Below are positions 2,522-61,896 of a stretch of DNA of 64,000 bases, in pieces (position 1 is the first letter of the stretch; every line of letters starts with the position of its first letter). The notes under the pieces are model-generated. The model saw only the letters and a list, made by a program, of their open reading frames with translations, had not been told where the DNA came from and made no database searches. The DNA lies in contig NIVC01001890.1 of assembly GCA_002269645.1 (NCBI GenBank), positions 1 through 64,000 of the forward strand, in the 5' to 3' direction. This DNA is from Macrostomum lignano. Taxonomy: Eukaryota. Position numbers and translations under genes: made by a program.

Positions 2522-4218
2522 ATGACAAGTTGTAACAGCTCCGAGGTCACTAGCTTAGCCTCAACATCGGCAAGAACTGCGACTGGAGCTATACAGGACT
2601 CAGCAAGCAGCTACACTCATACTACAAATAGTAACTGCAGGACCTCGCCACGACAAAGGCAATCATTATACGCGCCCCTGCAGCCAGAAGATGCTGACAA
2701 TCCTTCGACTGTGGTGTCCAAAGCTAGACAGTTGATAGCGGAACTGCAGGACCTGTTGAACTCGCCGACAACAGCAGCACCAGTAGGAGCATCTGCGGCG
2801 AAATCGTCGAAGACAAACTCAAACGGAAACCGACTGCAGACGGATGAAGTCAACAATATCGAAATCACGAACAGTGCTCGCAGTTTTAATGACGCCAGCT
2901 CATCAACAAGGTAAGATATTCAATGCTGTACTTGTGCGAAGTATGCAGACAATAATTGTGACAAGATCTCACTCTCACAAGCGGGGCTTGTGTGTCCAGG
3001 ATTATATGCTCAAGAGTCAGCGAAATGGGCAGAAGTGCCTCATAACTGGCTATGGGACGCTCTGGCTTTGCGCTATAGGTTGCCTAACTACGAGTAGTAT
3101 AGCCTGATTCGCACATTGTCAATGAGGGTGGTTCAGAAAGAATTGGTCTACAACTAAAATTTAGGTGGGAAAAAGCCTGTAACTACTCTCTGTCTCTCTG
3201 TATCAACTGAAGCAACATTCTTGATCCGAATTCAACCATCCAGCAATAGGTCAGCCAGCACGCAGAGACTGACAGCACATTCAGAGCCGCAGCAGCCGCA
3301 GGAGCCGCCCCTTGAGCTGCAGGCGTGTAACGGCCTATGCGTTGTGTTTGCCAACTATGCCAGCCTTTTGCCCGCATCGACCGCCGCTCTGAACAGCAAC
3401 TCAAACTGTCCAACGCCTGCCAATGGTACAACAACAAGCGGTACACAACCAACTGCTGAAGCTGACCCTGCCTCTGATGAAGAAGCCGATATGGATGCTG
3501 CCGCAGCGGACGGCGGCAGTCCGCGCCAGCTGCTGGCCCGAGCCAATCAGATTCGTGACGCGGCAGCGGCAATCGGCCGCCTGTTCAACAGCCGGCTGGA
3601 GTTCACCGTGTTTATCCACTGGAACAAGTCGCGCAGAGAGACGCTACGGCTGCTGCGGCAGACGGCCTCGGCGATGTCTGAAAGTGGACGCGACTGCTGC
3701 TTCGTGTTCTGCCTGGGCCGCGCGGTCGAGAACACTTCGAAGCGGCCAGTGGCGGCAGCGTGACCCTGACGGACATTCTAGCAACTCTGGCTGTTGGTCA
3801 GCGAGGCCGCCTACCTCCAGTGTTTGTTGTCGGAGAGCTCACGCCAGTAACGACTACAGCATACAGTGCAGCAGCATCTGTAGAAACGCCGCGCCTAAGC
3901 ATACCTAGCAACCATCTGTTGCTATGGTCGTTAGGCGCTCCAGAGATGACCGACCTGTTGGTTGAGCAGCTCACTAAAACTCATAGCGGCTCAAATTTAG
4001 GCAAAGATGTCGCTTCCACCGTAGCCGGCATTGCCGAATGGATTCGTCGACGTCGGAATGGAACGTCGTCGGCGAAGGGCGTCGGCGGAGATCGAGCAGT
4101 TTTATGCGGTAGAAACAGCGAAGATGGAGTCGGTAATAGACCAAGGCAGCAGTGCTGCTGCAGATTTATGAACAAACTAGACAGATTAGTGTACCTGGCA
4201 TCGCCTGACTGCATTTGA
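2522..4218 (+). CDS. Catalytically dead caspase-like (pseudocaspase) protein, 2 exons, one -1 frameshift near 3718-3722
   Basis: Exon 1 2522-2910 (donor GTAAGA at 2911); exon 2 3250-4218 (AATAG acceptor), phase 2 joins correctly. Caspase motifs in order: GLCVVFANY, RLFNSRLEFTVFIHWNKSRRETLRLLRQ, DCCFVFCLG, VTLTDIL, LPPVFVVGELT, IPSNHLLLWSL, CRFMNKLDRLVYL. ~452 aa if the frameshift is repaired. Confidence 0.65.
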
Positions 4219-8789: not shown

Positions 8790-9200
8790 TAACTGGGATT
8801 TCTCTAGGTGGGATTTCACTGTGTGAGATTTCAATAGGTGAGATTTTACTGTGTGGGATTTCATTAGGTGAGATTTTACTGTGTGGGATTTCAATAGGTG
8901 GGATTTTACTGTGTGGGATTTCATTAGGTGGGATTTCACTGTGTGGGATTTCAACAGGTGGGATTTTACTGTGTGGGATTTCAATAGGTGGGATTTTACT
9001 GTGTGGGATTTCATTAGGTGGGATTTCAACAGGTGGGATTCCAACGAGTGGGATTTCACTGTGAGGGATTTCATTAGGTGGGATTTCACTGAGTGAGATT
9101 TCAACAGGTGGGATTTCACTGTGTGGGATTTCAATAGGTGGGATTTTACTGTGTGGGATTTCACTAGCTAGATGGGATTTTTTAATAGGTGGGATTTCAT
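8790..9200. repeat. Minisatellite, 15/30-bp unit GGGATTTTACTGTGT/GGGATTTCAATAGGT, just upstream of HAO1
   Basis: Direct tandem copies; source of the KSHTVKSHLL pseudo-ORF. Confidence 0.93.
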
Positions 9201-9984
9201 TGCATCCCCAGAGTGTGCACTGCACAATAACCCAAAGCCTTTTTTCAAAACTAACTTCTCAAAGATTATTTTTGGCCGCCTGTCTGCCAGTAAATAACAA
9301 AGTTTGTCAATAAATTTAGTTTTCCCAACAACTGAACTTGAGGAACTGTTAAATTACAGTTTGATGGAAAAACTGGGTTTTATCGCACTACAAGACAAAA
9401 TGATGATAGTTTTATTAATACAACTTTAAAATGAGAATTAAGCAACTAGCAAAGGTGTCGGATATGAATTGAATTAAATTAGTTTATATTTACCTTATCA
9501 GGATTATCACAGTAGAAAGTGAAGTATTCCTCATGCAGCGAGAGTTCAGTAAATACCATTTAACTGCAGATTTATAATTTAGTTTAATTTGGCCGATATG
9601 TATCGAAAACAACTTCATAAAATGAATTCAATCTTTTAATAAACAGCAGTTTGAATTTTCTGATTTATATAAATTGATGAAAAAACGTTGCATAAACAAG
9701 GATATTTATTTGATTGAATAGAACGTTTATTAAAATTTTAATAGAGTTAGACAGCACACTAGAGAACTTTATGTACAAACATATATCGTTTTTTGTTTCT
9801 GTTAGGCTAGAAGCAGAAAAAATAATAGCAAAACGCATGGCACACAATGTTTGATTTTTATAACCAAACTTTAAAATATAAAGAAAATATAATATATAAC
9901 TAAGGCAGCTCTAGTAGATCTTTTCGCCTGGATATTCTTTAAAGTGATTAACAAAGTAAATAAAAAATTGAAACCCGAACCAAA

Positions 9985-11905
9985 TCGAGACGGGGTTGAG
10001 GAGTTGGTCGGATAGAGAGAGAATGTACATTGGCGGAGACGGGTGAGGAATTGGTCGGAAAAAAGAGCATGTAAATTGTTGGAGACGGGGTTGAGCAGTT
10101 GGTCGGATAGAGAGAGCATGTACATTGTTGGAGACGGGGTGGGGAATTGGTCGGATAGAGAGAGAATGTACATTGTTGGAGACGGGGTGAGGAATTGGTC
10201 GGATAGAGAGAGAATGTACATTGGCGGATACGGGATGAGGAATTGGTCGGATAGAGAGAGCATGTACATTGTTGGAGACGGGGTGAGGAATTGGTCGGAT
10301 AGAGAGAGAATGTACATTGTTGGAGACGGGGTGAGGAATTGGTCGGATAGAGAGAGAATGTACATTGGCGGAGACGGGATGAGGAATTGGTCGGATAGAG
10401 AGAGAATGTACATTGTTGGAGACGGGGTGAGGAATTGGTCGGATAGAGAGAGAATGTACATTGGCGGATACGGGATGAGGAATTGGTCGGATAGAGAGAG
10501 AATGTACATTGTTGGAGACGGGGTGAGGAATTGGTCGGATAGAGAGAGAATGTACATTGTTGGAGACGGGGTGAGGAATTGGTCGGATAGAGAGAGAATG
10601 TACATTGGCGGAGACGGGATGAGGAATTGGTCGGATAGAGAGAGAATGTACATTGTTGGAGACGGGGTGAGGAATTGGTCGGATAGAGAGAGAATGTACA
10701 TTGGCGGAGACGGGATGAGGAATTGGTCGGATAGAGAGAGAATGTACATTGTTGGAGACGGGGTGAGGAATTGGTCGGATAGAGAGAGAATGTACATTGG
10801 CGGAGACGGGGTGAGGAATTGGTCGGATAGAGAGAGAATGTACATTGTTGGAGACGGGGTGAGGAATTGGTCGGATAGAGAGAGAATGTACATTGGCGGA
10901 GACGGGATGAGGAATTGGTCGGATAGAGAGAGAATGTACATTGGCGGAGACGGGATGAGGAATTGGTCGGATAGAGAGAGAATGTACATTGGCGGAGACG
11001 GGGTGAGGAATTGGTCGGATAGAGAGAGAATGTACATTGTTGGAGACGGGGTGAGGAATTGGTCGGATAGAGAGAGAATGTACATTGGCGGATACGGGAT
11101 GAGGAATTGGTCAGATAGAGAGAGAATGTACATTGTTGGAGACGGGGTGAGGAATTGGTCGGATAGAGAGAGAATGTACATTGGCGGAGACGGGGTGAGG
11201 AATTGGTCGGATAGAGAGAGAATGTACATTGTTGGAGACGGGGTGAGGAATTGGTCGGATAGAGAGAGAATGTACATTGGCGGAGACGGGATGAGGAATT
11301 GGTCGGATAGAGAGAGAATGTACATTGTTGGAGACGGGGTGAGGAATTGGTCGGATAGAGAGAGAATGTACATTGGCGGAGACGGGGTGAGGAATTGGTC
11401 GGATAGAGAGAGAATGTACATTGTTGGAGACGGGGTGAGGAATTGGTCGGATAGAGAGAGAATGTACATTGTTGGAGACGGGGTGAGGAATTGGTCGGAT
11501 AGAGAGAGAATGTACATTGGCGGAGACGGGATGAGGAATTGGTCGGATAGAGAGAGAATGTACATTGGTAGAGACGGGGTGAGGAATTGGTCGGAAAGAG
11601 AGAGAGAGAATGTACATTGGCGGAGACGGGTGAGGAGTTGGTTGGATAGAGAGAGAATGTACATTGTTGGAGACGGGGTTGAGGAGTTAGTCGGATAGAG
11701 AGAGAATGTACATTGTTGGAGACGGGGTTGAGGAGTTAGTCGGATAGAGAGAGAATGTACATTGTTGGAGACGGGTGAGGAGTTGGTCAAATAGAGAGAG
11801 AATGTACATTGTTGGAGACGGTGCGAGGAATTGGTCGGAAAGAGAGAGAATGTACATTGGCGGAGACGGGTGAGGAGTTGGTCGGATAGAGAGCGAGAGA
11901 GAGAG
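9985..11905. repeat. Homogeneous 48-bp minisatellite (~40 copies) GAGGAATTGGTCGGATAGAGAGAGAATGTACATTGTTGGAGACGGGGT
   Basis: Head-to-tail copies with no spacers; two main variants (ATTGTTGG / ATTGGCGG). The 681- and 551-aa ORFs are artefacts. Confidence 0.97.
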
Positions 11906-12087: not shown

Positions 12088-14201
12088 TCAAAATTCTCCC
12101 AGAGCGAATTCGCGCAGAATCTCCGGCACGGAAGCGTCAAAGCCGACCAGATCGAGCATGCCGGGATCTTTGGGATCGGCAATGCTGAATTTGCTAGCCG
12201 TCATTGCCATCACGGCTAGGCGGCTTTCTGGCAGATTCATCCGATTCCTATACTTTACCAGAGCTTCGTGTGGATGCACGCGGCCAAAGTAGGTCTCATT
12301 GTCAGTCAGGACAACAAAAAGATCGAATTGGCGACGTTGCTTCAGCGCCCACAGCATCGGCTGGGCGCAGTCTGTTGAACCAAAATTACGTTTGCTAGTT
12401 TTAGCCAGAGCAGAATTCAGTGTGTCGTCAGAGCTGATGTTTAAATTGACTAGTTTGGAGCAGAAACCAACCACTTGGCAGGTGTTGGCAGGTTCGATTC
12501 GAACTGTGACCATAGCCAGAGCTGCAGCAGCTTCTGCGCAACTGATGCACTGAATAGGATTAGCTGGCGAACTCATACTGCCGCTAACGTCCAGAGCCAG
12601 TAGGATTCTTTTACCGGTTGGCTTCACATTTTTAAATGACAGGTAGAACGCTTTCTCAAGCGCGGTCACTAGTCGAGGCTCGGGTTGCCAAGTCAAACCG
12701 CCGCGAAAGCCCCGACCGGAGTCAACAATGCGCCAGGCGGCTAGAACGTTGATCGGATGAATCATTGCTTTGTGCAGCAGGTCGGCGTTGGTTATACGTT
12801 CGATAACAGTGTCTAGAAGGTCGGGCTTGTCGGTGAATAGGCCCGAGCTGAGGTATTTGGCTAAGGAACGGAGCATAGCTGTCAGCGGCATGTTAGTGAG
12901 CAGGGCCGCCATGACCTGAAAGGTAAAGTTGAAGATTTATTAATAAGATAGCAGTGCGTCAGCGATAAAATAGGTCGTAAAATTTTAAGGGGAGCGAGTG
13001 TACATTGGGAGAGACTTGTTTTGGAGGGTTTGGGTTGGTCGGGAGCGAGTGTACATTGGCGGAGAGGCTTGTTTTGGATGGTTAGGGAGTTAAGAGGTTG
13101 GTCGGGAGCGAGTGTACATTGGCGAGAGGCCTGGAGAGTTAGGGAGGTAACAGGTTGGTCTGGAGCCAGTGTACATTGATGGAGAGGCTTGGAGAGTTTT
13201 TGAGTTAAGCGGATAAGGGGGTAAAATCTCACCTGCTTTGACCCTAGCAGAGGTGCGGGCACGTGCTCGCGAACTAGGCCAAATTTTTCAATGAGCCCGG
13301 CAGCTACAAACTCCTCGCCGTTGTCCATCTTATGCAGCTGTTCGATGGCCTCTAGATAGGCCAGCACGTTGGCCGAGTCAGACTCGCTAGGCCAGTTATC
13401 GCGAACAGCTTCGATACCTTTAACGCAGTAGCGCAATAGGCAGTTAAGCAATGGTTTGTCAGTTTTAGCGTGGCAAAGTCGCAGCAGATCGCGATGAGTC
13501 CAGCCGCCTCTGTTGCGATATTTTGTCACCATGTAGGCCAGACGTTTTGGCGTGTCGGCAAACTGCAGGTACCATTTAGCGACTGCCCGGCGTTGAGCCC
13601 GACCCCAGCCTGTGCCAGCAGGCTGGCAGGCCTTCTGCCCGATGTCGACAAACTGGAACAGGTGAGTTGGTATGCGGCACACCTCGTCTAGGCAAGCGTA
13701 GGCCGCTCGTTTAGTGGCCGGATCGTTGCTATGGGCACACAGAGCCAAAGCAATTTGTATGCCATCCTGTTTAGCAGTTCGACCTTCGACACTATACTGT
13801 CGAATAGTGGCTACAGCTTCTGGTCCTTGGCCGGCTTGGATGAGGTTCTGCAGCGCTAGAATGTTAGTAACTGTGAGTTCATTCTCACTAGCATAGTAGG
13901 TGCCAGACTCGCATCCAATGCAGATGAAGCGCTTGAGCTGCTGGATGTCAGTCACTTGGAATACATAGCCACCTGCACTGTTCTCAACCTGATCAACACT
14001 GACTGGCTGAGTCTGTGGAATTGATCCCATCTGCTGAGAGTCCACTTCCATTGAGTTGCTGCTACTGCTGGAACTTCTATGTCGGTGATTCCAGCGGGTA
14101 TTAGGATAAGATGGCATTCCAAAGGGACTCGGAGTAATTGAGGAAGCAGCAGCAGCTGCAGCATAGTTTCTCTTGGCTTGCTTGGATTTGCGTCTGGGCA
14201 T
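12088..14201 (-). CDS. RO60: Ro60 RNA-binding protein (TROVE + vWA domains), 2 exons, 598 aa
   Basis: Exons 13233-14201 and 12088-12915 (phase 0, KQ|VMAALL). Motifs DQVENSAGGYVFQV, LKRFICIGCESGTYY, RIPTHLFQF, GWGRAQRRAVAKWY, KYRNRGGWTHRDLLRLCH, MPLTAMLR, LALDVSGSM (MIDAS), GSTDCAQPM, VVLTDNET, IADPKDPGMLDLVGFD. Confidence 0.96.
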
Positions 14202-15684
14202 GATGACCTTAGTGCAGCTATTCTAAGCTGAAACATTTAAAAGAAAGGAATGTGTTTATTGAATGTCATAAATTTTGAAAATAAGAACATTAGCTATGCT
14301 ATAATGCCACTTCATTTGTACATCATTTGTTTTTCTCATTTTGCTTCTTCTTGTTTTGCCTATTCTATTTTGCTTACTTGGTTCCTTGTTGGTTACTGCT
14401 AATTGATTTGCTTAGATAATTTAGATTGGCTAGATTGGCTAACACTTGCATGTGTCTTATTTAAAAAGCCTTTTTTATTTACCTATAACCATACCTAGGC
14501 CTAAATAGACTTTAGATAAATCTTATATATGGGGCCTAGCAAATAATTTCATGATTGATTAATTAAACAAAAAATCTATTTGATAAATAAAAGACCTAAA
14601 ATATATAAACAAAGTGAAAAGTAAAATGAGGCCTACAAATCAAGCTTACAGCCTAGGTATACAGCCTAGCTACAAGAATTAGCCTAATAACAGACTTGCT
14701 ATAGCCATAGGCATAGAAATGAAAAAAATAAAAATAATAGTCAAGACAAGGTAATGTATTTTTAATTTTATTATAATTTGCAAAATCAGCATAGGCCCTA
14801 GGTCTGTTGGGTAAGGTTATAGTTAATAATTAAATACTAAAAATAGAACTTGGATAGGCCAATCTAAGTATAATCAAAAGGCCAAAAACACAGTAGCTAG
14901 GTGACTAGTGACCTACATCCTACTATAGGTCTAAGGCTAGGCTAGGCCTAGTCATGGGACATACTCACATAGGCCCTAAGATATTAAGATTAGCTAAAAA
15001 TCTGACAAAATTTATTCTTGATTTTTGCTATAATTATTAGGACTAGGCCTAGTTATAAATAAATTAAACTTAAAAAGCAAAGACAAAGGAATTTTTATCA
15101 TGTAACATAATTCCATCATAGTATCTATCTCCCTAAGACTTGAATATCTACAGTACACCTAATACAAATTGCTGCCAAAAAATAAATGAAATATAAAAAC
15201 CTAGGCATATTTATCTATTTAGACATTTAGAGCTGTGGCTAATGCCATCTTGGTGTGTGGCCATCCAGCCCATCCTGGTCATGCGCCAATAGGCCTACTA
15301 TAATAATTTTTAACTTCTTTAATGCCTTAACTTATAGCATACCATAGTCTTATTAGCTATCCAAAGTGTGTCTTATATAGTATCAGGCAGATAATTTCGA
15401 CATAATGTTGCAACATTTGCAAAGAACCGAACACAATTGTCCTGACTGCCTGTGCCTTCCGTATCCAGAACATACATGCGCAACAGTCGGCCGAGTCGGC
15501 CGATCCGGCCGACCGATTTGGCGGCCAACCAAGTAAGTCGCAAAATTGATTAACCGCCAAAAAAAACGAAAAAACAAAAGACGAAAAAGGGGAAAGGAAA
15601 AGGAAAAAACGAGAAAAAGGGAGCAAAGAGAAAGAGAAAAACACAAAAAGAGTTGTAAGTGCTGTAAGTTGCAGCACTGAAGAC

Positions 15685-18600
15685 AAGGTAAGTCGCACCG
15701 AGGGCGAGCTAAGTCGCACCGAGGGCAAGCTAAGTCGCAGCAGGACCGAGCTAAGTCGCATCGAGGGCGAACTAAGTCGCACCGAGCGAGAGCTAAGTCG
15801 CACTAAGGGCGAGCTAAGTCGCACCGAGGGCAAAATAAGTCGCACCGAGCGAGAGCTAAGTCGCACTAAGTCGCAGCAGGACCGAGCTAAGTCGCACCGA
15901 GGGCGAGCTAAGTCGCAGCAGGACCGAGCTAAGTCGCACCGAGGGCGAGCTAAGTCGCAGCAGGACCGAGCTAAGTCGCACCGAGGGCCCCGATCAAAAA
16001 GAAGTTGTCTTAAGACGTCTTAGAATTGTCTTAAGATGGCTAAAGACACCTCAAGACAATTTCAAGATATCTTCAACTTTGCTTCCACAAGCTATCCTGA
16101 TAAAGTTGTCTTGAAGATGACTTGAAATTGACTTTTATGAGATGTCTTGTTGAAGACATCTTTAAGACATCACCTTAAAGACTAAAAATTTACATAAACA
16201 ACTGTTTCTACTGTAAGTAGAAAGTTTCAGATACAAATTTATCCAGATCGTTAAAATCAATAAAAAATAAAACAAGCAACTATTGTGACATTTATCTAAA
16301 AATTTTGTTGTATTGTAGTCTGTGGAAGGTGTGCCTTTTATTAAAAATCGTTTACGCTTTTGAAGTGCAATTATGTGCAATTTTTGTATCGAGTCGTTAC
16401 AAACTTTGAGACAAAGTTTAACTACAACAGTTTTGATTGAAGCAAATATATTTACAAAATTCTAAACAGCTAAGCATTAAAAAAGACAAAGTTGCAATAT
16501 ATATCGGTTATGCTTTTGTTAAAAACAGCTAAAATCAATATGGCGGAACGACATTTTTAAAAAGGACTAAAAGACAACCTTGTGACCGTGAAGGCCGCCT
16601 AATTGTTGAACACTTGCTTCTATCTTTTGTGATAAGTTTCAATTTTTCATTGGCTGCTATAGCCTATATAGATTTCTGGTGTAAGCCCTACCCTAGATTT
16701 ATCTTTACTTAATGCGATAGTGTATTACTATTCGTGATCGTGATGATACATCTACTATCCTCAAATTAGACCAATTCCTAGTAGTATTTTTTACTAATTC
16801 TTCCTTGGATAGCTTCTAGGATTGTATTTCATATTCTAGTGCCAGGTGCCAGCAAAAAAACCAGATTGGCCAGAAATGTTTTTATGCAATAGGCAATAGG
16901 GATGCTATGTAACATCCTGACCTAAAAATTACAATTTTAAATTGGACCTTGGATGCAATGTTTTTTTAGTTAGGCCTACTGCATATATATTGCTATGCCT
17001 AGCACTAGTAAGCACTAGTTAACTAATGCATAGTCATGTTTACATTTTAAGTTAGGCCTTAAAAGATTCAGGCATTAACTAGAGGCCCATGTACTAGGCC
17101 TAAAACTAAAAATATATGTTTTATTTACTTCTGGCTTTTTAAAGTCAAAGTTTTATAGTTGTTGAATTGGCTTATTAGGCTATTTTGTTCTGTTGTAGGC
17201 CTCTTAGCTGTAGATAGGCCCTAGCTTCTTCCTTAGGCCTAAATAGTTTTTGCTTTGATTTTTATGTCAAAAGTAATAAATAATTTCCATGAGCCTATAG
17301 CTAGGTTTATTTTTTATATGCAGAGTTACTTTTAATTTAAAATTGCACCCAGAAATTGAAAATTGCAATTTAGGGACAGTCTTATAACCTGTTTTTATGT
17401 TAAACTTGAAGCCTCATTTGCATTGCCCTAAAATAAGAAAAATAAGAAATTGCACTTTGAGCCTTAAAATTGCACTATAAAAATGAGTATAGAGTGCACT
17501 TTTGCACCTTGTCTTTGGCAAAAAAGAAAACCTTGGCCTATAGGCCTTTATATGTTGCTTCCTCTTTGCCTTTATTATTGGCTAATGACATATATATGAT
17601 GTTTTCAATATATCAATATTTTGAATATTAGGCCTAGTCATTCGTGCTTTTTTCTTGGCTAGGCCAATGAAAATTTAAATAAGAAATAGATATAGCCTTA
17701 TAATTTATTATTAGGCCTATATCACATTCAAAAATTGGATTAGGCCTAATAGAGAATAAATAGAGTTGGTATGCCTAGAAGTTTTATATAAAATTGATAT
17801 TCTAATCTTTTTATTTTGCTTTGAGATTAGGCCCTAAGCTTTAGCCTATGTATTTAAGCCTAAGGCAAAGTTATTGTATAATACACTTGTGTGAATATAT
17901 AGTAGGGGCCTAGGCAATTTATTTATTAGATTTTTAAAGTATATTAGTATAATAATCTATTATTTATTATTTATTGTTTTTTACTTATGAATTTCAAATT
18001 ATTTCAGCCTAACAACCTATAAACTATAACCTTTATTAAACTTATCCTTTCATGCCTTATCAACACATGCTATCCATCATAGTGGAAGCTAACCTGGATC
18101 TTGAATCTTCCTGGATTGAGCCAATTCTAAACTACTAAACAATTCTGGCTAGCAAAGGATCAATTTACAGCAAGTTTTCCACCAAGCATTGAGCAACTTT
18201 TATTGCATTAACCAAGTATTTCCATGCAATGACAGGGTATGATGCATTATAAAATTATACACTTGCACTTGAGTATTTTTGCATTTTTATTTAGTGTATT
18301 TTAACTTGTTTTTGATTCACCATTTTATTGCTTCTGTGACTTTTAAACTGTGCCTTTTATAAAATGAAAATATAAATCATAAATCATAAATTACATTGAA
18401 CCATGTTTAGAAGCCTACTAAATAGCTTCTCTTTCATATCAATATTGCCTGAAACGAAACAAAAGAGTGCTGTAATATTTTTAGTCATTTTTCTTTTAAA
18501 CAACTGTGATTGCAATGGCAACAGCATTTCTTAAATGATCTTGGGCAAGACGTCTTCTGCAAGTCATCTGGAAGATGTCTTTAAGTAGATTTTAAGATGT

Positions 18601-19150
18601 CTTGAAGATGTCTGAAGACGTCTTTAAGTTATCTCTAAGTTGTCTACAAGTGTTGCAAGGAGCCAATTTTTAGACCGAATTAAGTCAATTGTAAGATGTC
18701 TTGAAGACATCTTTCTGTCTTATGCAAGACATCTTTAAGACATAATTAAGCCAACTTTTTTTGATCGGGGCGAACTAAGTCGCACCGAGCGAGAGCTAAG
18801 TCGCACTAAGTCGCAGCAGGACCGAGCTAAGTCGCACCGAGGGCGAGCTAAGTCGCAGCAGGACCGAGCTAAGTCGCACCGAGGGCGAGCTAAGTCGCAG
18901 CAGGACCGAGCTAAGTCGCACCGAGGGCGAGCTAAGTCGCAGCAGGACCGAGCTAAGTCGCACCGAGGGCGAACTAAGTCGCACCGAGCGAGAGCTAAGT
19001 CGCAGCAGGACCAAGCTAAGTCGCACCGAGGGCGAGCTAAGTCGCACCGAGCGAGAGCTAAGTCGCACCGAGGGCGAGCTAAGTCGCAGCAGGACCGAGT
19101 AAGTCGCAGCAGGGCCGAGGTAAGTCGCAGCAGGACTGAGTTAAGTCGCA
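15685..19150. repeat. 21-bp minisatellite GAGCTAAGTCGCA(CCGAGGGC/GCAGGACC), split into 15685-15988 and 18770-19150 by an insertion
   Basis: The array resumes in register on both sides of the 15989-18769 insert. Confidence 0.9.
15989..18769. mobile_element. 2.78 kb non-autonomous TIR element, CMC/EnSpm-like (CCC...GGG ends, 2-bp TSD GC)
   Basis: Left CCCGATCAAAAAGAAGTTG, right CCAACTTTTTTTGATCGGG. GC is duplicated at 15987-15988 and 18770-18771, restoring CCGAGGGCGAACTAAG. Multiple palindromic AAGAYRTCTT subterminal motifs at both ends; AT-rich non-coding interior. Confidence 0.8.
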
Positions 19151-19500
19151 GAGCATCTTTAGGATTATTAGGTTAGGATTAGTTTAGGATGAATTTAATG
19201 TATCACTTACTAGGGTGTAGGCTACGTGTGCATTAACGCATCAATTTGAAAAATTAAGAATTACGAAGCCAGAAATGGCTAAGGAATAGAAATAGGGATA
19301 GAATAACTTATAAGCAGTAATTTTTCAGCCCTATTACAATTGCAAATCATACTTTTAATAATATTTAATTAGCAAATTAAAACTGCAAGATTCTAACGGT
19401 CTTATATATGAACTTAGAAGAACTGTAGTCTTAATGATTATGCATGTACCATTGTAATAATTGATTAAAATTGTAGCAGATTAAAACTGATAAAAAACTT

Positions 19501-22500
19501 TTAAAATAGTCCACTTAGCAAATCAGAATCAGAATCTTTATTTTCCTCGTCTACGTTGGATTCTTTTTGCCGTTGACCTCCAGGAGCATCAGAACGCCAG
19601 TGTTTTTTCAGCCAATCATTGACATAAATATCCGGCTTAAATTTCATCAGCGGAGGCCCATTTATTCGAATCCGTAGTAGATGCTCCAATGTTTTTGGTG
19701 CCAAGCGTGTTCTCCTGTCATAGGCAATGTGCTTATAGATAGAAAACCCTCTTTTAGCCTCAGCTGATGATATTGGCAAAGTTAACACAACCATAATTAG
19801 ATTCTTTATTCTGGGCAGCCATTCAACAGTTCTTGTCTCTAGAAAGTGACTCCAAAATTTCACCGGACCTTTGCCTTTGTAGGCACAGAAGTCAACACTA
19901 TGCGAAGTGATCAAACTTTTTAGGAGTAGACCGAACTGACCAGAGATTGTCCTTTCTGTAGCGCGTTCTGAAGCATCTGCATCTCTAGAGTCTGAATCAG
20001 AAAGATGGTCCTCTGTTTCAGATTCAGAGCTGTCATCTTCCATTCCAAACCGTCTAGCAAGAGGTATGATTCTCGAACTGTATGTAAAGACAGTATGTAA
20101 TGTTTCAGCATTAGGCAATAACACTGGGTTGAGCACATTAAATATTGAGTAGTCATCCTCAGGAAAATAATTACGCAGCTGATCAATTATGCTATCAATG
20201 ATTCGACTGCGAATCTCATCCAGTGCTGGATAAGCTCCCATGTCAACAACACTGCCACGTCCACTAGCATCAAATAATCTATTTCTTAGAGATCTGTCTG
20301 CAGCAGAACCTGGTTGCTTCAACTCAAACCTCTCTGTTGGATCGCTGCTTCCAGGGCCGGAAGGACAAGCAAAGTTAGAATAAGATAGGTCTCTTGTGTG
20401 ACATCCTGAATGGTATTCCAGCTGCGGATATCCATCTGCAGTTCCCAAAACTCGACGACACTTGCAGGAAGCCAAAAAGTCCACAATGCGAGGACCATTG
20501 TTCGTTTTTAAGGTTTCTAGTGAATGGATAAGGTTAGTGTGGCGTTCTTGCAAGCCAATAAATGTACCCTTGGCTCTTTGAAACTGCAAGGACTCAAATT
20601 CCAGTAATTTTAGAATGTCCATGAGAAATAGATGTAATGAATAATACCGGACATTTTGCAATGTTTTCAATAATCCAGAGGCAGTTGCTTTACTTTCGTC
20701 ATCAAAGCCTGAGGAAGGTGATTTGATATTTTCTAAATTTGTCAGAAGCAAGTAGTATGACTTTCGAATCACATCAAGAGCAGACACTTCCGATGCAACC
20801 CACCTGATACGATATATTCTTTTTAATTCATAGAAAACCAAGTTGAGTGCTTCCGAAGTTTGTGCCAAAGATGCCTTACGTTTAACAGCGTGGCTCATAT
20901 AAAATTTGTGTAGAGAATTTATATTCTTATCGAGATGTTGCATAAATAGGAAGATTTCAAAGGCATGATAGATTGAAAGTTCTAACTTATGCGCTGCACA
21001 ATGGTGCTGAAAAAATTGTTTGCTAGCCCAAGGCCTCAGTTGACTTATTAATCCCACTCGACTTCCTGTCATTACGGATGCACCATCAGTTGTCACCCCC
21101 CATAGCCTTCGTTTGATTTCATCTTCTAGCTTGTCATCCGAAAATAAACGGATGAGAAGTTCATAAATGCTTCGTCCAGTCTCTACTTCAGTCAGACGTT
21201 TAAACCGATAAAAAAACATCAAAGGTTGGCTGTTTTCAAGAACTCTGAAGTATATCATGACGTAGCTGTTTGAATGAATATCAGACGTTGTATCTAGTAC
21301 AATAGAAATCGGAAGGTTGTCAGCACTTTTAATGTAATTCACAAATGTCCGATGCATTGTATTACTGATTGATTCCACCATTGCTGCGGCACTTTTGCGA
21401 TGCTTATGATGGCTCCCCATATCCAACCCATTTTTTACTTGTAAATCAATCATATTTGGATGAGCACTGAATGGAATATTAGATTTGACTTCGGCGAAAA
21501 AACTGTTGTCAAAACTCGGGCTGTTATTTCATCTCGTTTAGTTTTAGCTAGTCTAGCGGCCTCATTCATCTGTTTGAGTTGCTTTGCAAGAACTGAAGTA
21601 TGTTTTTCCTTCATCCACTTTATGGCGTCACTGTGAAGTGTATTTGATGAATGTTCCTGTAGTTTTCTTCGTACGCTATCTTTTGCATGACCTTTGGGAA
21701 TGTAGCCTTGTTCTGTTGCAAAAGTTAACTTACGTTGGCTCTCTAGATTTGTCTCCTTTTTCTTATGTGCATTCAAAAATTTTCTGCAGATCCGACATTG
21801 TATTCCAGATCTTGATAGATCTTCGGTGTTTTGAACATATTGAAACCATGTCTTCATTTCTTGTGACACAAATTTTCTTGAAAATGATCTGCAATGGTCA
21901 AATTAGAGAATATTTTGGGATTTGGACTATTTGTGAGTATCTAAAAGCAATATGCTAATAAGTGCAATACACAATACACTATACATTAATTTACAGTTCG
22001 TCAGTTTCCATTTACTTACTGTGACTGGTGCATCTCCAAAGAATGTAACCACTCCTCTCGAAAACCAGATGTATCCTCCCAGTCCTTTTTAGGGAAAACT
22101 TCAATATTTTCGCCCATCATAGAGGAAGACGAGGGCTTTGATGCTGAAGTGGCTAGACATGCGTCTGCAGATGTGCTTATACATGGTATTTTTCTTTGCG
22201 ATGGCCCTGCTTCTGCAGTATTTACTTGTACTATTTCAACATCACCTGAACCCCTTGAGTCGCTCGAATCTAAATCAACAATAGGACTTTGGCAAAGTGA
22301 TCGTTTCGTTGATTGTCTTTGAATATTTACTTGCCTAATAATTTCCACTTGTAGTTTGCTTGTTTGCTGGTCATTCTCCAACAACTCTCTTCTTTCCTGT
22401 ACATTTGCAGCAGAGCAAAAATTAGAAGTTTCTGCAGCAGCAGTTTGAACAGCATGATCTCGATTAGCTGCTATTTGCTCTGAAAATTCATAGGACCTGG

Positions 22501-23607
22501 CCAATTCACTACGGTGTGAGCTTTCAGAACATGGAGCTGGAGCAGGAGCTAGTCGCATTTCGATTCTTTCTGTTGCTGATGAAGCAGATGCTAATGCTGA
22601 GTCTGCCAATGTACATGCTTCTCTTGAAGGTGTATTTATGATGGCTTCAATATTGTCCTCTAAAATCCAATGAGCACCTGAGCAGTCATTTTATCTACCT
22701 GGAGTCAACTGTCCAAGTTTCCACCTTGTAAAAAGCAAAGGCTTTCGTAACTCACTGCTGGATTCAGGGCACCGGTTTATTGAATAGTCCTCATGACCAA
22801 GTTCATCCCATTCTCTTGCTGGCTTTAAGATGTAGTTGGGCTTGTCTCTTAGCCTACGATAAATGGACTCAAAAATGTGCACCTGTTATTGTTCCTAATA
22901 ATTTCAGCTAATGAGTTATCAATGATAATTTTATCTTCATAAACAGGTCTTCTTTGTGTTGCATGCATTTTAGCTAGTCGCAGTTTTCCAATGCTACTGG
23001 CAGTTGTGGAACTTGAACTGTCCGATTCTGATCTAGAAAAGTCTCGTTGATACAAGAGAATAATGGCCATAGCACTTTTACCATTCCCATTCTTTAATGC
23101 ATTTGGTTCTGTTGGAATTGTCTTACTAGCAGACTTGAAAAAATCAATGATGGATGACTGCGATGATCTACTAGGAGCGGAACTTGGCAGCCCATGTCTA
23201 GTTTTTCCCTGATACCCAATAGATGTATCGGTAAAAAACATATCTGCTGCTTCCTGCTTCCCTTTTGATGCAATAACAAAGAAACTGCTGTCCGTTTTGA
23301 AGCCCGAGGACCGATAGAAGTCAGCAGAAAATGAAACCACAGGTCGTCTAAAATCGCCGCTATATTCTTGAACTCCAATCAGAAGAAAATCATGGAGTCT
23401 CACTGGCACTGATCCTAATAGCATTGCAGTTGTAGAACAAACTTTCTTTAGCTCAATGAACTCTGAAAATTCTTGAGATCCAATATTAGGCTCATCAGTA
23501 TTTAACTCATTTATAACAATTGAGCACTCACTCTCAGCTAGAATACCATTGATAGCTAGGATGCCACTTAGAATCAGTAGGCAAAGACAACTAAGGCTGT
23601 ACATCAT
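19501..23607 (-). pseudogene. hAT transposase (ZNF862/KIAA1586-like) with N-terminal signal peptide + lamin-tail-like domain; disrupted (2 frameshifts, 1 in-frame stop, catalytic E>K)
   Basis: Model: 23607-22020, intron 22019-21889 (GTAAGT...TTGCAG, phase 2 fits), 21888-19501; ~1325 aa if repaired. hAT motifs SIVLDTTSD, TTDGASVMTG, HCAAHKLEL, RIRWVAS, LPISSAEAKRGFS, RRTRLAPKTLEHLLRIRINGP. Lesions: -1 at 22871-22875, TAA at 22691-22693, -1 at 21497-21502. Confidence 0.8.
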
Positions 23608-25638
23608 TCTGTGAAAGATTAAGTCGAGTATATGATTTTGGTGATAAAATAAAATTGATTTATGAGTATTACTATATAAATAAAACATTTAAAAGCCCTT
23701 ACCTTTACCAATTCATGTACAGAAAGTAAGTGTAAATACAACCAATTGCCTTGGTAGTTTAGTTATATGCTCGTATCAGATGCAGGCAGACAGCATAGGC
23801 TGCCAAGGTGCTATAAGTTAAGGTTAACTTTCACTATTTGGCTTTACAGACTGCTTTTATCGCTGCATGCATTGACTTAGCCTTAGCTTGTGCCATCATA
23901 CTCATACAGCTATATATACATATGTATCTCTGCCACTCCCCACTTTTGCAACCTTACACTGTACAATCATGCCTAAAACACTCCGTGTCAAGTGTACTGT
24001 TCTAGTGCCACATGGGGTACAAATACGATAAGGAATGACAAGAGTCAAAACCATACATGCACAATAGTTGGCCGATATGGACGACTGATTTGGCGGCCAA
24101 CCAAGGTAAGTTGCAAAAATGCCCACCCAAATAAATACCAAAGTAGTATTAAGTAGCTGACGAAGCATTTTGCCTTAATAAAGACAGTCATAGTTACTCC
24201 TGCCGTTTACCCAAAGTTGCGTTAATTTTGCTTTCAGGTTTTTTCATGTAAGTCGCATTTTTGGCCGAAAACTACGTCGCATTTTTGTTAAAACTAAGTC
24301 GCACGGCCGACCAAATTTTGGAGGTTGCGCATGTATGATCCAGAAGCACTTGAAAATGACGAATCAAAATGTTGCACATGTTGTCGAAATTAAACTGTTG
24401 CTATGCTTTTGAATTTAAAAGAATATAACAAACACAAAATAGTTTAAAGCATATTTGTTAGTTAATTTTTTTACTTGAATATAAAAACAAATAACAAAAA
24501 ACGTATTTGAAATTAGACAGTTTTTTAAAAGCTTTGTATAATACGAAATGTAAAATTTGAATTGCGTAAACCTTGTATTTTCGAGAAAATTCTTTCATAC
24601 GTTGTTTGTTAACTCTAAGTCTAAGTTCGTTAAAGTTAAAGTGACTGAAAAATGCAGATAGGACATATGGTAGTCTAAGATATTGTTGTCAAATCGTTTG
24701 AATTCGGTAAATGTTTAAATTTAGTGCATAATTTATATCTCTTCCTTCATACATGAACACGATTTGAATTAAACCCATTGTGACTTTTGTGAGATGATGA
24801 GATGAGACTAGGCGGCCTATGATTTACTTTGTATTTGTTCTTGTATAAACAGTTAAAGACTGTAAAGTTTTTTAGCCATATAGGGTAGGCCTATGCCTAA
24901 TGGAAATGAGTGGGAACTAAGAATGGCTCCATTCCATGATCCTCCATCAATAGCATAATTTGATTATAAAATGTGATAGTACTAAATGTGATTGTAAAGT
25001 TATCACATTTACTTTCAGTTTAAAGTGTAATAACTTTCAATGATATTGTTTGACAATGACAATGTTGAAAATGACATTGGCAAGGACAATGAATGTGTAA
25101 TGTCAATGTACATTATATAGTGCCTAGAAATTTCTATGACAAGATATTCGGGTGACAATCTTTTAGATAAGCCCTAACAATGACATGTTTCACATTTTTG
25201 CAATCCTGAATCCTTTGGTTTCCCACTCTGAATTATCTGAATAGACTTTTATTGCATACAAAAATAAGAGTATACAAAAAATAATTTATAAACTATGACC
25301 TATATAATATTAAAGGTTTACAAAGTTTCAAAATTTAAAAAATGATTAAAAAAAAACAGTTTAATTTTTTACTAAAGCATCAGGAACTATTTTTTAAACT
25401 ATTTTTGTTTAACTTTAACTTTTAACTTTCTAGAAAAATGAAACAATTTTTTTATTTAGTTTTCTATTATTAAGTAGAAAGGATTAAAAACTATTCTTTT
25501 TTTATCAAAATTTAGCTGGAATTTTCGATGAAAAAGGCCACCTTCCTGACTGTGGTATATAAAGAGACTTTAGGGTCTGGATTGTATAGTAGTATATGCC
25601 AGAACAAGAATCCTAGCTCATCTAAATGTATGCCAGTG

Positions 25639-30411: not shown

Positions 30412-31757
30412 TAGTGCTGGCGCCCCTTTGATGCTGGCGCCCCTTGGTGCTGGCGCCTCTTGGTGCTGGCGCCACTTGGTGCTGGCGCCACTTGGTGCTG
30501 GCGCCTCTTGGTGCTGGCGCCCCTTGGTGCTGGCGCCTCTTGGTGCTGGCGCCACTTGGTGCTGGCGCCTCTTGGTGCTGGCGCCTCTTGGTGCTGGCGC
30601 CCCTTTGATGCTGGCGCCTCTTGGTGCTGGCGCCCCTTTGATGCTGGCGCCCCTTGGTGCTGGCGCCCCTTGGTGCTGGCGCCTCTTGGTGCTGGCGCCC
30701 CTTGGTGCTGGCGCCTCTTGGTGCTGGCGCCTCTTGGTGCTGGCGCCCCTTGGTGCTGGCGCCTCTTGGTGCTGGCGCCCCTTGGTGCTGGCGCCTCTTG
30801 GTGCTGGCGCCCCTTGGTGCTGGCGCCACTTGGTGCTGGCGCCTCTTGGTGCTGGCGCCTCTTGGTGCTGGCGCCCCTTTGATGCTGGCGCCCCTTGGTG
30901 CTGGCGCCCCTTGGTGCTGGCGCCTCTTGGTGCTGGCGCCCCTTGGTGCTGGCGCCTCTTGGTGCTGGCGCCCCTTTGATGCTGGCGCCCCTTGGTGCTG
31001 GCGCCCCTTGGTGCTGGCGCCTCTTGGTGCTGGCGCCCCTTGGTGCTGGCGCCTCTTGGTGCTGGCGCCCCTTTGATGCTGGCGCCCCTTGGTGCTGGCG
31101 CCCCTTGGTGCTGGCGCCCCTTGGTGCTGGCGCCCCTTTGATGCTGGCGCCCCTTGGTGCTGGCGCCCCTTGGTGCTGGCGCCTCTTGGTGCTGGCGCCC
31201 CTTGGTGCTGGCGCCTCTTGGTGCTGGCGCCTCTTGGTGCTGGCGCCCCTTGGTGCTGGCGCCTCTTGGTGCTGGCGCCCCTTGGTGCTGGCGCCTCTTG
31301 GTGCTGGCGCCACTTGGTGCTGGCGCCTCTTGGTGCTGGCGCCCCTTTGATGCTGGCGCCCCTTTGATGCTGGCGCCCCTTGGTGCTGGCGCCCCTTGGT
31401 GCTGGCGCCTCTTGGTGCTGGCGCCCCTTGGTGCTGGCGCCACTTGGTGCTGGCGCCTCTTGGTGCTGGCGCCCCTTTGATGCTGGCGCCCCTTGGTGCT
31501 GGCGCCCCTTGGTGCTGGCGCCCCTTGGTGCTGGCGCCCCTTGGTGCTGGCGCCACTTGGTGCTGGCGCCTCTTGGTGCTGGCGCCTCTTGGTGCTGGCG
31601 CCCCTTTGATGCTGGCGCCCCTTGGTGCTGGCGCCCCTTGGTGCTGGCGCCCCTTGGTGCTGGCGCCTCTTGGTGCTGGCGCCCCTTGGTGCTGGCGCCC
31701 CTTGGTGCTGGCGCCTCTTTGTGCTGGCGCCTCTTGGTGCTGGCGCCTCTTGGTGCT
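30412..31757. repeat. GC-rich 16-bp minisatellite GGTGCTGGCGCC(T/C)CTT (~84 copies)
   Basis: Direct tandem copies with a TTTGATGC variant; generates all the GAPAPRGASTK ORFs. Confidence 0.97.
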
Positions 31758-32267
31758 GAGGCAACTTTAGTCCTATTCATCTTGAAAAAATATCGTTTAG
31801 GCTTCATTTCTTAGAATGCTTTTTTGTTAATCTACTACCACGAAATTGTTATTATTTATTTGTTTCTATTTTGTAGAGAAATCGCCTCTACCTCACCTGT
31901 GTCTGTTGCTCATCGAGTTATTTATTAAACGAAGCGACAGGTTTGAAAATGTTTTTAATATATTGAAAACAAAATTATTCTGCAATAATTATTCAATGAT
32001 TGACAACTAGGATAGTTATAGTTTAGTTAGGATATTTTAGATTGTTTATTTACAATTTTTTTCTCAATTTTACCCGCGCCACCCCGAAACAGCTGCTCAT
32101 ATTTTTGCAGACAGCTAACTGGTTGCAATGCTGTTGGATCGTTAATTCGAAATTCGTTTCGTCGAAAAATTCGGGCCACGTGACAAAACCAATAATTATG
32201 ACTTTTATTTAGAAAACTGTTTCGCTTCTAACACACACACCCTCGTTTTTTTAATTCCATATTTCAG

Positions 32268-36229: not shown

Positions 36230-36745
36230 ATGTGGCATAGAGTCTCCATATTCTAGTGGCATAGTCTCCATATTCTAGTGGCATAATAGTCTCCATATTC
36301 TAGTGGCATAGAGTCTCCATATTCTAGTGGCATAGAGTCTCCATATTCTAGTGGCATAGAGTCTCCATATTCTAGTGGCATAGAGTCTCCATATTCTAGT
36401 GGCATAGAGTCTCCATATTCTAGTGGCATAGAGTCTCCATATTCTAGTGGCATAGAGTCTCCATATTCTAGTGGCATAATAGTCTCCATATTCTAGTGAC
36501 ATAGAGTATCCATATTCTAGTGGCATAGAGTCTCCATATTCTAGTGGCATAGAGTCTCCATATTCTAGTGGCATAGAGTATCCATATTCTAGTGGCATAA
36601 TAGTCTCCATATCCTAGTGGCATAGAGTCTCCATATCCTAGTGGCATAGAGTCTCCATATTCTAGTGGCATAGAGTCTCCATATTCTAGTGGCATAGAGT
36701 CTCCATATTCTAGTGGCATAGAGTCTCCATATTCTAGTGGCATAG
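36230..36745. repeat. 24-bp minisatellite TAGTGGCATAGAGTCTCCATATTC
   Basis: Direct tandem copies (MPLEYGDS pseudo-ORF). Confidence 0.96.
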
Positions 36746-61400: not shown

Positions 61401-61896
61401 TTCCTCTCCATCTCACCCTCTCCATCTCCCTCTCCATCTCCGTCTCCATCTCCCTCTCGATCTCTCCCTCTCCATTAACCGTATTTGTATTTATAGTACA
61501 TAATTTGTAGTATATGGAAATGTGGACGAAAATCCATATATTCAAAACATTTTCTGTTTCTTACAGTTCAACGGAGAGCAGGGTCGCTTCTTTGCTACAT
61601 TAATTCGCAAGCAATCCAAGTTGCCCAGCGACTCCGGCATCGGCATCAACTACAAAGCTTTGGAGGCGTGTCTGGTTGCCGTGCGGCACCCGTTGCAGAA
61701 TCCTGCCGGAGCCCTCATCGCTGTTGCCAAGGTGGTCTCGGATTATTACAATTTCGTTAACAGACTGCTGGCGTTTAGGAATTCCGGCCTGGAGCTGACG
61801 ACCGCCCAGTTTCCCAATCCGCATCCGACCACCTTCTTTGTTAGCGACCGCTGGACCGGACAGGGACAGTCCCAGGTAACGGCCTGTCTGTCTGCC

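Follow-up and report, generated by a model that had tools for sequence, protein, structure and literature searches.

A hAT transposon family of Macrostomum lignano whose transposase likely carries a signal-peptide-like and lamin-tail-type module

Transposases are nuclear enzymes, and a secreted or lumenal transposase would have no obvious route to chromatin. The locus considered here, in a stretch of 64,000 nucleotides of Macrostomum lignano contig NIVC01001890.1 (hereafter the window), raises the question of whether a hAT transposase can nonetheless be fused to the N-terminal half of a secreted protein. A preliminary description had joined four minus-strand open reading frames (ORFs) into one frame that would begin with a signal peptide and a lamin tail domain (LTD) and end with a transposase. 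The join called for two single-T repairs, one read-through stop and one intron, and the product was interpreted as a transposon family with a secretion module on its transposase or as a captured host gene. We found all four ORFs as described. The evidence makes it likely that window positions 15471-24337 are a single insertion of a hAT DNA transposon that exists in multiple copies, its core being of the FAM200/ZBED5/ZNF862-like (DUF4371) type, and that the transposase of this family does carry a signal-peptide-like/LTD module.

The complete element lies on the minus strand, and the segment originally described, 19501-23607, covers only its coding part (Table 1). It was inserted by cut-and-paste, leaving an 8-bp target site duplication (TSD). 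Its ends were located by comparison with paralog L008 followed by a motif search; a generic inverted-repeat search limited to 17-27 kb did not recover the terminal inverted repeats (TIRs), because a nested insertion shifts the 3' end to 15471. This insertion of about 2.8 kb splits the 3' 21-bp tandem array of the element and is without any ORF of 70 aa or more of obvious function. In L008 a tandem array occupies the equivalent place, downstream of the stop codon. The TSDs differ between copies: L008 is flanked by AATTTAAA, the 6364-bp element of paralog L010 by TAACATCC, and a 297-bp miniature derivative (MITE; L010 positions 9122-9418) adjoining the latter by TCCAGAAA. Annotated paralogs number at least 16, spread over different contigs. 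The LTD part and the transposase part both fall inside the TIRs and TSDs in three M. lignano copies; the flanks of two metagenomic copies, L006 and L009, gave no convincing TIRs.

Table 1. Features of the element and its immediate borders, in window coordinates
Feature	Position	Strand	Basis or remark
TSD ATCCAGAA, 3' side of element	15463-15470	.	Identical 8-mer at 24338-24345
3' TIR CATACATGCGCAAC, perfect 14 bp	15471-15484	+	Exact match; same TIR ends paralogs L008 and L010
3' subterminal 21-bp tandem array (TAAGTCGCA...), distal part	15689-15988	.	TRF
Nested insertion, about 2.8 kb, inverted ends GCCCCGATCAAAAA, AAGAC/GTCTT subterminal repeats	15988-18770	.	
3' subterminal 21-bp tandem array, proximal part	18774-19151	.	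TRF
Exon 2: C2H2-type finger and hAT DDE core; stop codon 19503-19501	19501-21888	-	Identical to PAA56523.1
AAA (Lys) replacing conserved glutamate of S-A-[DE]-x-E-R-G-F-S	19753-19755	-	P0184 and P0190 have E
hAT dimerisation region	19857-19654	-	Pfam Dimer_Tnp_hAT (PF05699), E=4e-6
Core motifs	DTTSD 21294-21280; TDGAS 21093-21076; CAAHKLEL 21000-20977; RWVASE 20805-20788	-	Motif alignment
Frameshift TAC>TTTTC, net +2 nt	21497-21502	-	Versus intact paralog P0184 (reads TTVYAEVK)
C2H2-type finger	CRIC 21797-21786; H..H 21653-21633	-	
Phase-2 GT-AG intron	21889-22019	-	Homologous intron spliced in RNA-based L010 model; retained in L002 and L008
Linker	22020-22681	-	42-nt deletion at 22434/22433
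Conserved W-E-D-T-S..F..W motif	22081-22067	-	Within linker
Degraded basic cluster QRKIP	22198-22184	-	Within linker; QRKRP in P0001
Divergent LTD-type domain, IVINELN to NDC	22682-23520	-	hhalign versus PF00932-positive repeats
Signal-peptide-like N-terminus MMYSLSCLCLLILSGILAINGILA	23536-23607	-	Kyte-Doolittle 19-residue mean 2.39
5' subterminal TGCGACTTA repeats	24249-24303	.	TRF; conserved both in L008 and in the L010 MITE (297 bp)
5' TIR CATACATGCGCAAC, perfect 14 bp	24324-24337	-	Exact match
TSD ATCCAGAA, 5' side of element	24338-24345	.	Identical 8-mer at 15463-15470

The coding sequence starts at the ATG at 23607. Exon 1 ends at 22020 (CA/GTAAGT) and exon 2 starts at 21888 (CAG/A), giving a phase-correct join. 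The postulated intron is borne out on two counts: the spliced window product ...LEMHQSQSFSRKFVSQEMKTW gives a gap-free alignment with ORFs that are uninterrupted in other lineages (P0003, P0006, P0019-22), and an identically placed intron of the same phase is removed in the RNA-seq-derived GenBank model PAA51197.1. The latter, from paralog L010, is an intact protein of 1313 aa with the same layout, annotated under RNA-seq guidance. Single ORFs of 1009-1249 aa running from the LTD part, or from the whole module, through the hAT C-terminus occur in many lineages. They include P0006 (1009 aa) and at least nine relatives of 1086-1249 aa drawn from metagenome and SRA assemblies (P0024, P0027, P0032, P0062, P0063, P0070, P0083, P0105, P0151). 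The intact relatives share one architecture, in which a hydrophobic signal-like peptide is followed by an LTD-like domain, a linker with a basic cluster, a C2H2 finger and the hAT core.

One could argue that the window simply juxtaposes two unrelated genes, a secreted LTD protein ending at the TAA at 22691 or at the intron, and a hAT element that inserted beside it; the join does, after all, need two frame repairs, a stop read-through and an intron. This explanation is all but excluded. Both parts lie within one set of TIRs and TSDs, uninterrupted ORFs span them in many lineages, an RNA-based model of 1313 aa exists, and there are relatives with neither the stop nor the frameshifts. The fusion inferred in the preliminary description held, and two of the results that were to overturn it were not obtained: intact relatives carry the module, and the LTD part is not a separate gene ending at that TAA. 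The transposase is likely to be one polypeptide of about 1100-1300 aa comprising a cleavable-type signal peptide, an LTD, a linker, a C2H2 finger, a DDE/RNase-H core and a hAT dimerisation domain, the function of the signal peptide being inferred from sequence alone. The linker is predicted to be partly helical; it has a basic cluster that fits the consensus for a nuclear localization signal (NLS) as well as that for furin, and a W-E-D-T-S motif.

The repairs themselves fared less uniformly. Relative to the intact relative L002, the T run at 22871-22875 has indeed lost 1 nt; the other presumed single-T error is a net gain of 2 nt. The stop (TAA, 22693-22691) is a genuine lesion, as relatives have GAA (Glu), which we take as ancestral. 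Three further lesions had escaped notice: an in-frame 39-nt deletion at 22891/22890 that removes VHDMIIYGRSTQN, the 42-nt deletion in the linker, and a lysine in place of the ERGFS glutamate, which we take to be the catalytic E by analogy with Hermes. That the copy is intact and its frameshifts mere homopolymer sequencing errors might be suspected from the position of both in T runs, but this can be practically dismissed. Sequencing errors of this kind would leave the two deletions, the stop and the lysine unaccounted for; the 650-aa ORF following the second frameshift is annotated at several other loci, and at least one of these, P0174, carries the same lysine. At least four other annotated 650-aa copies have ORFs with the same start, MIDLQV, from which we infer that they apparently share the second frameshift, and so it is not a read error. 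The window copy is dead and can no longer make transposase: two frameshifts, the GAA>TAA stop, the two deletions and the E>K change render it non-autonomous, and it carries the nested insertion besides. At best, it might still be mobilized in trans by intact copies.

Is the N-terminal domain an LTD? A direct match to PF00932 had been anticipated, but none was found at E values up to 1-10 for the window protein or for 12 relatives (from P0001, P0002, P0006, P0016-P0040, P0190). The case rests instead on an amphioxus LTD protein, which itself matches PF00932 with E=7.5e-95. The family HMM recognizes this protein with E=2.7e-58, each repeat giving colinear half-matches, and hhalign of the family against eight amphioxus LTD repeats gave end-to-end probabilities of 99.0% (E=4.4e-18) and 99.6% (E=7e-25), versus 0.4% for a reversed control. 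Two cysteines, C264 and C293, are invariant in the family, and the amphioxus repeats carry Cys at the same two places (SRC...N.C). Structure prediction with AF2 required 48 aligned sequences (pLDDT was 34 with three) and returned a strand-rich model with pLDDT 77, mostly above 85 in the domain. Sequence and profile searches of the PDB produced only noise, and a Foldseek search of the PDB with the uncropped 576-aa model found only weak Fab/Ig-like matches, none of them an LTD and all with E of 0.02 or more. We conclude that the domain is probably a divergent LTD beta-sandwich, on evidence that is transitive and profile-profile in nature.

The family is large. When representatives clustered at 50% identity were searched with a profile, 242 relatives emerged; P0004-P0007 have precomputed assignments to PF27073 and PF14291. 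With the N-domain profile as query, a word-indexed search for homologues yielded just five proteins, none named. The N-terminal module evolves under purifying selection (dN/dS about 0.2): signal peptide and LTD together have a ratio of 0.18, and the core has one of 0.15. Selection over the whole ORF and the existence of an intact expressed copy could suggest a domesticated gene, a hAT-derived secreted protein serving the host and no longer mobile, and many animal hAT relatives, such as ZBED5, FAM200 and ZNF862, have been domesticated. Nevertheless, copies at different loci with perfect TIRs and differing perfect 8-bp TSDs, the MITE, the 16 or more paralogs, the degraded copies, and DDE motifs conserved across the whole family (motif alignment) make this very unlikely. 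We do not exclude that single copies have been domesticated in other taxa.

Whether the N-terminus works as a signal peptide is harder to decide. By a heuristic criterion (a 10-aa Kyte-Doolittle window of at least 2.0 within about 10-110 aa, typically 15-35, before the domain), 52 of 70 members keep a hydrophobic N-terminus of variable sequence, with small residues or Cys adjoining the domain after it; in the remaining 18, about a quarter, hydrophobicity is weak or absent. The N-terminal helix is the sole hydrophobic segment: the full-length members scanned had no second hydrophobic or transmembrane segment between LTD and finger/transposase. A type-I membrane topology, with a transmembrane segment at that place, was rejected on these grounds.

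It is possible that the N-terminus is not a working signal peptide at all and that the LTD is a nuclear accessory binding chromatin, DNA or the lamina, as lamin tails do, with the basic cluster as NLS. Lamin LTDs bind nuclear partners. The transposase must get to DNA, the NLS-like cluster is conserved in 36 of 43 members, there is no transmembrane segment to keep the catalytic part cytosolic, and the members lacking a strong hydrophobic window also speak for this reading. Against it, the hydrophobic region is kept in most members while its sequence drifts freely, as is typical of signal peptides, and the closest homologues are extracellular, signal-peptide-bearing LTD repeats with the same invariant Cys pair.

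The reading we prefer is that of a genuine signal peptide. We infer a single capture event, in which the module came from a host gene encoding an LTD-repeat protein of the extracellular type; the earlier suggestion of a captured host gene is best understood as bearing on the origin of the module and not as an alternative to a transposon. As selection kept the module through the radiation of the lineage, it presumably serves the element. The signal peptide would route some or all of the transposase into the ER, and there the LTD would fold with a disulfide; a nuclear pool would arise by incomplete translocation, from a signal-less isoform, or by re-entry. The module would thereby set where and how much transposase reaches DNA. 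Localization is inferred here from sequence alone, and although we favor this mechanism, we rate it as somewhat less likely than not. A bolder scheme, which we consider unlikely, can also be envisioned. Somatic cells would make the transposase and release it by means of the signal peptide; its extracellular-type LTD would attach to the surface of other cells, for example oocytes, which would take it up. The basic cluster would serve either as NLS or as the place where a convertase frees the finger-transposase half, and the enzyme would then mobilize copies that the recipient genome already contains. If true, this would be a protein-only route from soma to germline, even between individuals, that sidesteps transcriptional silencing in the germline; gypsy and ZAM would be its analogues, with the difference that a DNA transposon is involved here. 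The architecture put forward in the preliminary description is supported; the functions it suggested, extracellular spread or regulation by mis-targeting, are hypotheses only.

A large, selectively maintained hAT lineage with a secretion-type signal and an extracellular-type binding domain breaks the expectation that transposases are nuclear. It points either to a new control of transposase dosage or compartment or to intercellular delivery of transposase. It also places the LTD fold in a new context and would, if our inference is right, be a case of a DNA transposon that acquired a secreted-protein module of its host by exon capture. M. lignano is competent for transgenesis (PMC5730564); with the intact expressed PAA51197.1 and the natural 297-bp MITE as a possible substrate, the question is therefore directly testable in this animal.

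The lineage is widespread and apparently undescribed. Our literature search turned up no hAT with an LTD or a signal peptide, and in full-text literature no paper combined 'lamin tail domain', hAT and transposase. Its nearest named counterparts are the Buster-like FAM200/ZBED5/ZNF862/C17orf113 hATs (DUF4371, PF27073), which likewise have 8-bp TSDs and short TIRs, D, D, CxxH, RW and ...ERGFS motifs, a C-terminal hAT dimerisation domain, and a CxxC...H...H finger N-terminal to the core. Signal peptide and LTD are both absent from the named relatives that were retrieved (ZNF862-like, C17orf113-like), whereas the M. lignano-type lineage has about 500 extra aa (signal peptide, LTD, linker) upstream of the finger.

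For the N-terminal domain, the closest comparison is Branchiostoma floridae LOC118427361 (C3ZWX4, PF00932). Its units share with the transposon domain their start, [IV][IV]INE[LV]N.D.P...E[FY]IEL, and their end, S..RC...F...TPG..N.C; the Cys pair is common to both as well, and the amphioxus protein has a signal peptide where the transposon protein has a signal-peptide-like N-terminus. The amphioxus protein contains multiple repeats, is a type-I membrane protein and lacks a transposase, whereas the transposon domain is single, is extended by two insertions, each of about 40 aa, and scores under the Pfam LTD threshold. The Ig-fold of the lamin A/B tail and the bacterial LTDs, beta-sandwiches that belong to the same Pfam family by transitive homology, have no direct sequence or PDB match to it, the only structural match to the PDB being non-specific and Ig-like. 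Bacterial LTDs are found attached to secreted nucleases or hydrolases. Two further parallels are functional and imply no homology. Gypsy and ZAM are soma-to-germline retroelements that use the secretory or endocytic route; PTHrP and FGF3 have a signal peptide and an NLS in competition, and so combine secretory and nuclear-type basic signals on one polypeptide, as the signal-peptide-like N-terminus and the NLS-like cluster of the transposon protein would do.

The transposase of this hAT lineage is a fusion of a signal peptide, whose function is inferred, with a lamin-tail domain (LTD), a finger and a DDE core. The preliminary description had claimed that a signal-peptide/LTD module is joined to a hAT transposase, and as an architecture this held: hydrophobic N-terminus, domain, linker, W-E-D-T-S motif, C2H2 finger and full hAT core lie in a single ORF in at least 15 relatives (900-1250 aa, all from metagenome or SRA contigs), and PAA51197.1, an intact Macrostomum lignano paralog, supports the same arrangement. 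In the literature searched, no earlier description of such a transposase was found. When the N-terminal module served as the profile in an exhaustive search, 242 representative proteins scored E<=1e-3 or better, 135 of them E<=1e-10 or better. Family members conserve the D, D, CxxH, RW and ERGFS motifs; in Pfam, the sole match of the window protein is the hAT dimerisation domain, in its C-terminal part (E=4e-6). The signal-peptide/LTD/finger half (P0019) and the hAT-core half (P0007) each come from a 5208-bp Logan contig, apparently the same one, as two ORFs; they probably represent one more full-length element, interrupted by an intron or frameshift.

The joins between the window ORFs are real biology. 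All four minus-strand ORFs claimed at 19501-23607 were found. Linking them requires a frame change, passage through a TAA and removal of a GT-AG intron; a fourth change connects the zinc-finger ORF with the 650-aa ORF. The phase-correct intron that had been proposed also held. The GenBank model PAA51197.1 (1313 aa) has it spliced out at the identical site and in the same phase, models of this assembly deriving from a genome-guided RNA-seq transcriptome (PMC5730564), and in other lineages (P0003, P0006, P0019-22) the region is uninterrupted and aligns without gaps to the window's spliced product. Two related loci, L002 and L008, retain the intron, which in L002 is enlarged by a (CCACT)n expansion. 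Many ORFs of subgroup 2 (e.g. P0038, P0045, P0052, P0075) terminate directly after W-E-T-T-K-Y-F, so these members seem to share an intron that lies a few codons 5' of the one in M. lignano.

The window copy itself is a defective hAT insertion. Its exon 1 was compared with P0001 (loci L002-L004), a near-identical SRA-assembly relative with exon 1 intact. Of two single-T repairs previously proposed, the upstream frame change held, as a T-run deletion, and the downstream frameshift held in a different form; the supposed read-through stop held as a lesion (Table). An identical 650-aa ORF starting MIDLQV is annotated at several further loci, so the downstream frameshift is apparently common to them and not a read error. 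The ERGFS glutamate is replaced by Lys.

The coding ORFs belong to a transposon that extends beyond 19501-23607. Homology between the window and the M. lignano paralog L008 begins abruptly at CATACATGCGCAAC, a 14-mer with exactly two window occurrences. The element reaches 8867 bp owing to a nested insertion of ~2.8 kb, apparently non-coding, that interrupts its 3' subterminal 21-bp tandem array. In M. lignano this lineage is expressed and has moved recently. M. lignano PAA56523.1 is identical to the 650-aa ORF, and its 90% cluster contains 18 proteins on M. lignano contigs, with 4 more in a second cluster (~70% identical); the window is thus flatworm DNA and the gene multi-copy. A MITE adjoins the intact element at L010, and its ends match the window-type subfamily and not its intact neighbour, which suggests recent trans-mobilisation. 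A degenerate TIR-like 14-mer lies inverted inside the 5' region, exactly at the start of L002 homology, and at window 23775|23763 L002 contains 658 bp of extra sequence (L002 stretches concerned: 1-146 and 428-1085); this region may have a composite history.

About 1.3 kb from the transposon 3' end, two adjacent ORFs, separated by a frameshift or short intron, encode a Ro60/TROVE protein (TROVE E=2e-22, Ro60 vWA domain E=3e-65). Another ORF matches a caspase domain weakly (Peptidase_C14, E=9e-5). Mini- and microsatellite arrays crowd the whole window: TRF lists 89 rows, many of the arrays span 0.5-2.4 kb, and strand skews are strong. Several long "ORFs" are mere translations of these arrays.

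Table. Coordinates of the transposon, its lesions and other features (window positions unless a locus is named)
Feature	Position	Strand	Remarks
TIR CATACATGCGCAAC	24324-24337	minus	exact match
TIR CATACATGCGCAAC	15471-15484	plus	exact match
TSD ATCCAGAA			flanks both window TIRs
L008 element			same TIRs, TSD AATTTAAA
L010 element			6364 bp, intact 1313-aa gene, TSD TAACATCC
L010 MITE	L010 9122-9418 (M. lignano NIVC01003487)		297 bp, same 14-bp TIRs, perfect TSD TCCAGAAA
Nested element	15988-18770		inverted ends GCCCCGATCAAAAA, many AAGACNTCTT subterminal repeats
TIR-like 14-mer CATACATGCACAAT	24052-24065	plus	degenerate
GT-AG intron	donor CA|GTAAGT 22020|22019; acceptor CAG|A 21889|21888	minus	
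1-nt deletion	T run 22871-22875		vs P0001
GAA>TAA stop	22693-22691		vs P0001
39-nt in-frame deletion	22891|22890		vs P0001
42-nt deletion	22434|22433		vs P0001
Second frameshift TAC>TTTTC	21497-21502		vs intact paralog P0184
Ro60/TROVE ORFs	12088-14201	minus	
Caspase-like ORF	3221-3763	plus	
Satellite arrays (examples)	9987-11893, 30414-31758, 36232-36745, 57399-58584, 59050-61475		

Judged by dN/dS, constraint on the N-terminal module equals that on the enzyme: values are 0.18 for signal peptide plus LTD and 0.29 for the linker (window vs L002), 0.30 for exon 1 (L002 vs L008) and 0.15 for the transposase (window vs L008). A strongly hydrophobic stretch, unconserved in sequence, occurs in a short leader (typically 15-35 aa) ahead of the domain in 52 of the 70 members with a complete N-terminus. 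That this is a functional signal peptide is inferred, its function being untested. No second hydrophobic segment was found between LTD and transposase. A basic cluster (e.g. RKRK, RRKRRLS, PKKKR) precedes the W-E-D/T-T motif by 12-30 aa in 36/43 members and would be compatible with a classical NLS; the almost invariant subgroup 2 version, N-R-[RK]-K-R-[RK]-L-S, would also fit the furin R-x-K/R-R consensus. Dual targeting might bring a lumenal or secreted transposase to chromatin, although no explanation is established. Alternatively, the LTD could have a nuclear role, or the secretory-type module might serve intercellular delivery of the transposase.

A direct match to Pfam PF00932 had been expected. 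This failed: a Pfam scan of the window protein's N-terminal 530 aa gave no match, nor did direct Pfam and PDB searches with the LTD-like domain. LTD homology was found instead through amphioxus repeats. The N-module profile search also recovered an eight-repeat amphioxus protein that has both a signal peptide and a TM segment and matches Pfam LTD at E=7.5e-95. An HMM of the transposon domain (13 sequences) gives colinear matches to both ends of each amphioxus repeat, and hhalign aligns the two end to end for subgroup 1 (99.0%, E=4e-18) and subgroup 2 (99.6%, E=7e-25), against 0.4% for a reversed control. An AF2 model on a 48-sequence alignment is confident and rich in strands; its only Foldseek matches in the PDB are weak and Ig-like, so the LTD assignment rests on profile homology and not on the fold. 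Two Cys in the ...S.NRC...TPG..N.C ending are invariant in a 21-sequence alignment and are inferred to form a disulfide. We infer that the module was taken from a host extracellular LTD-repeat gene. Relative to the amphioxus LTD repeats, the transposon domain is longer by two inserted stretches of ~40 aa each, and it has this same ending in common with them.
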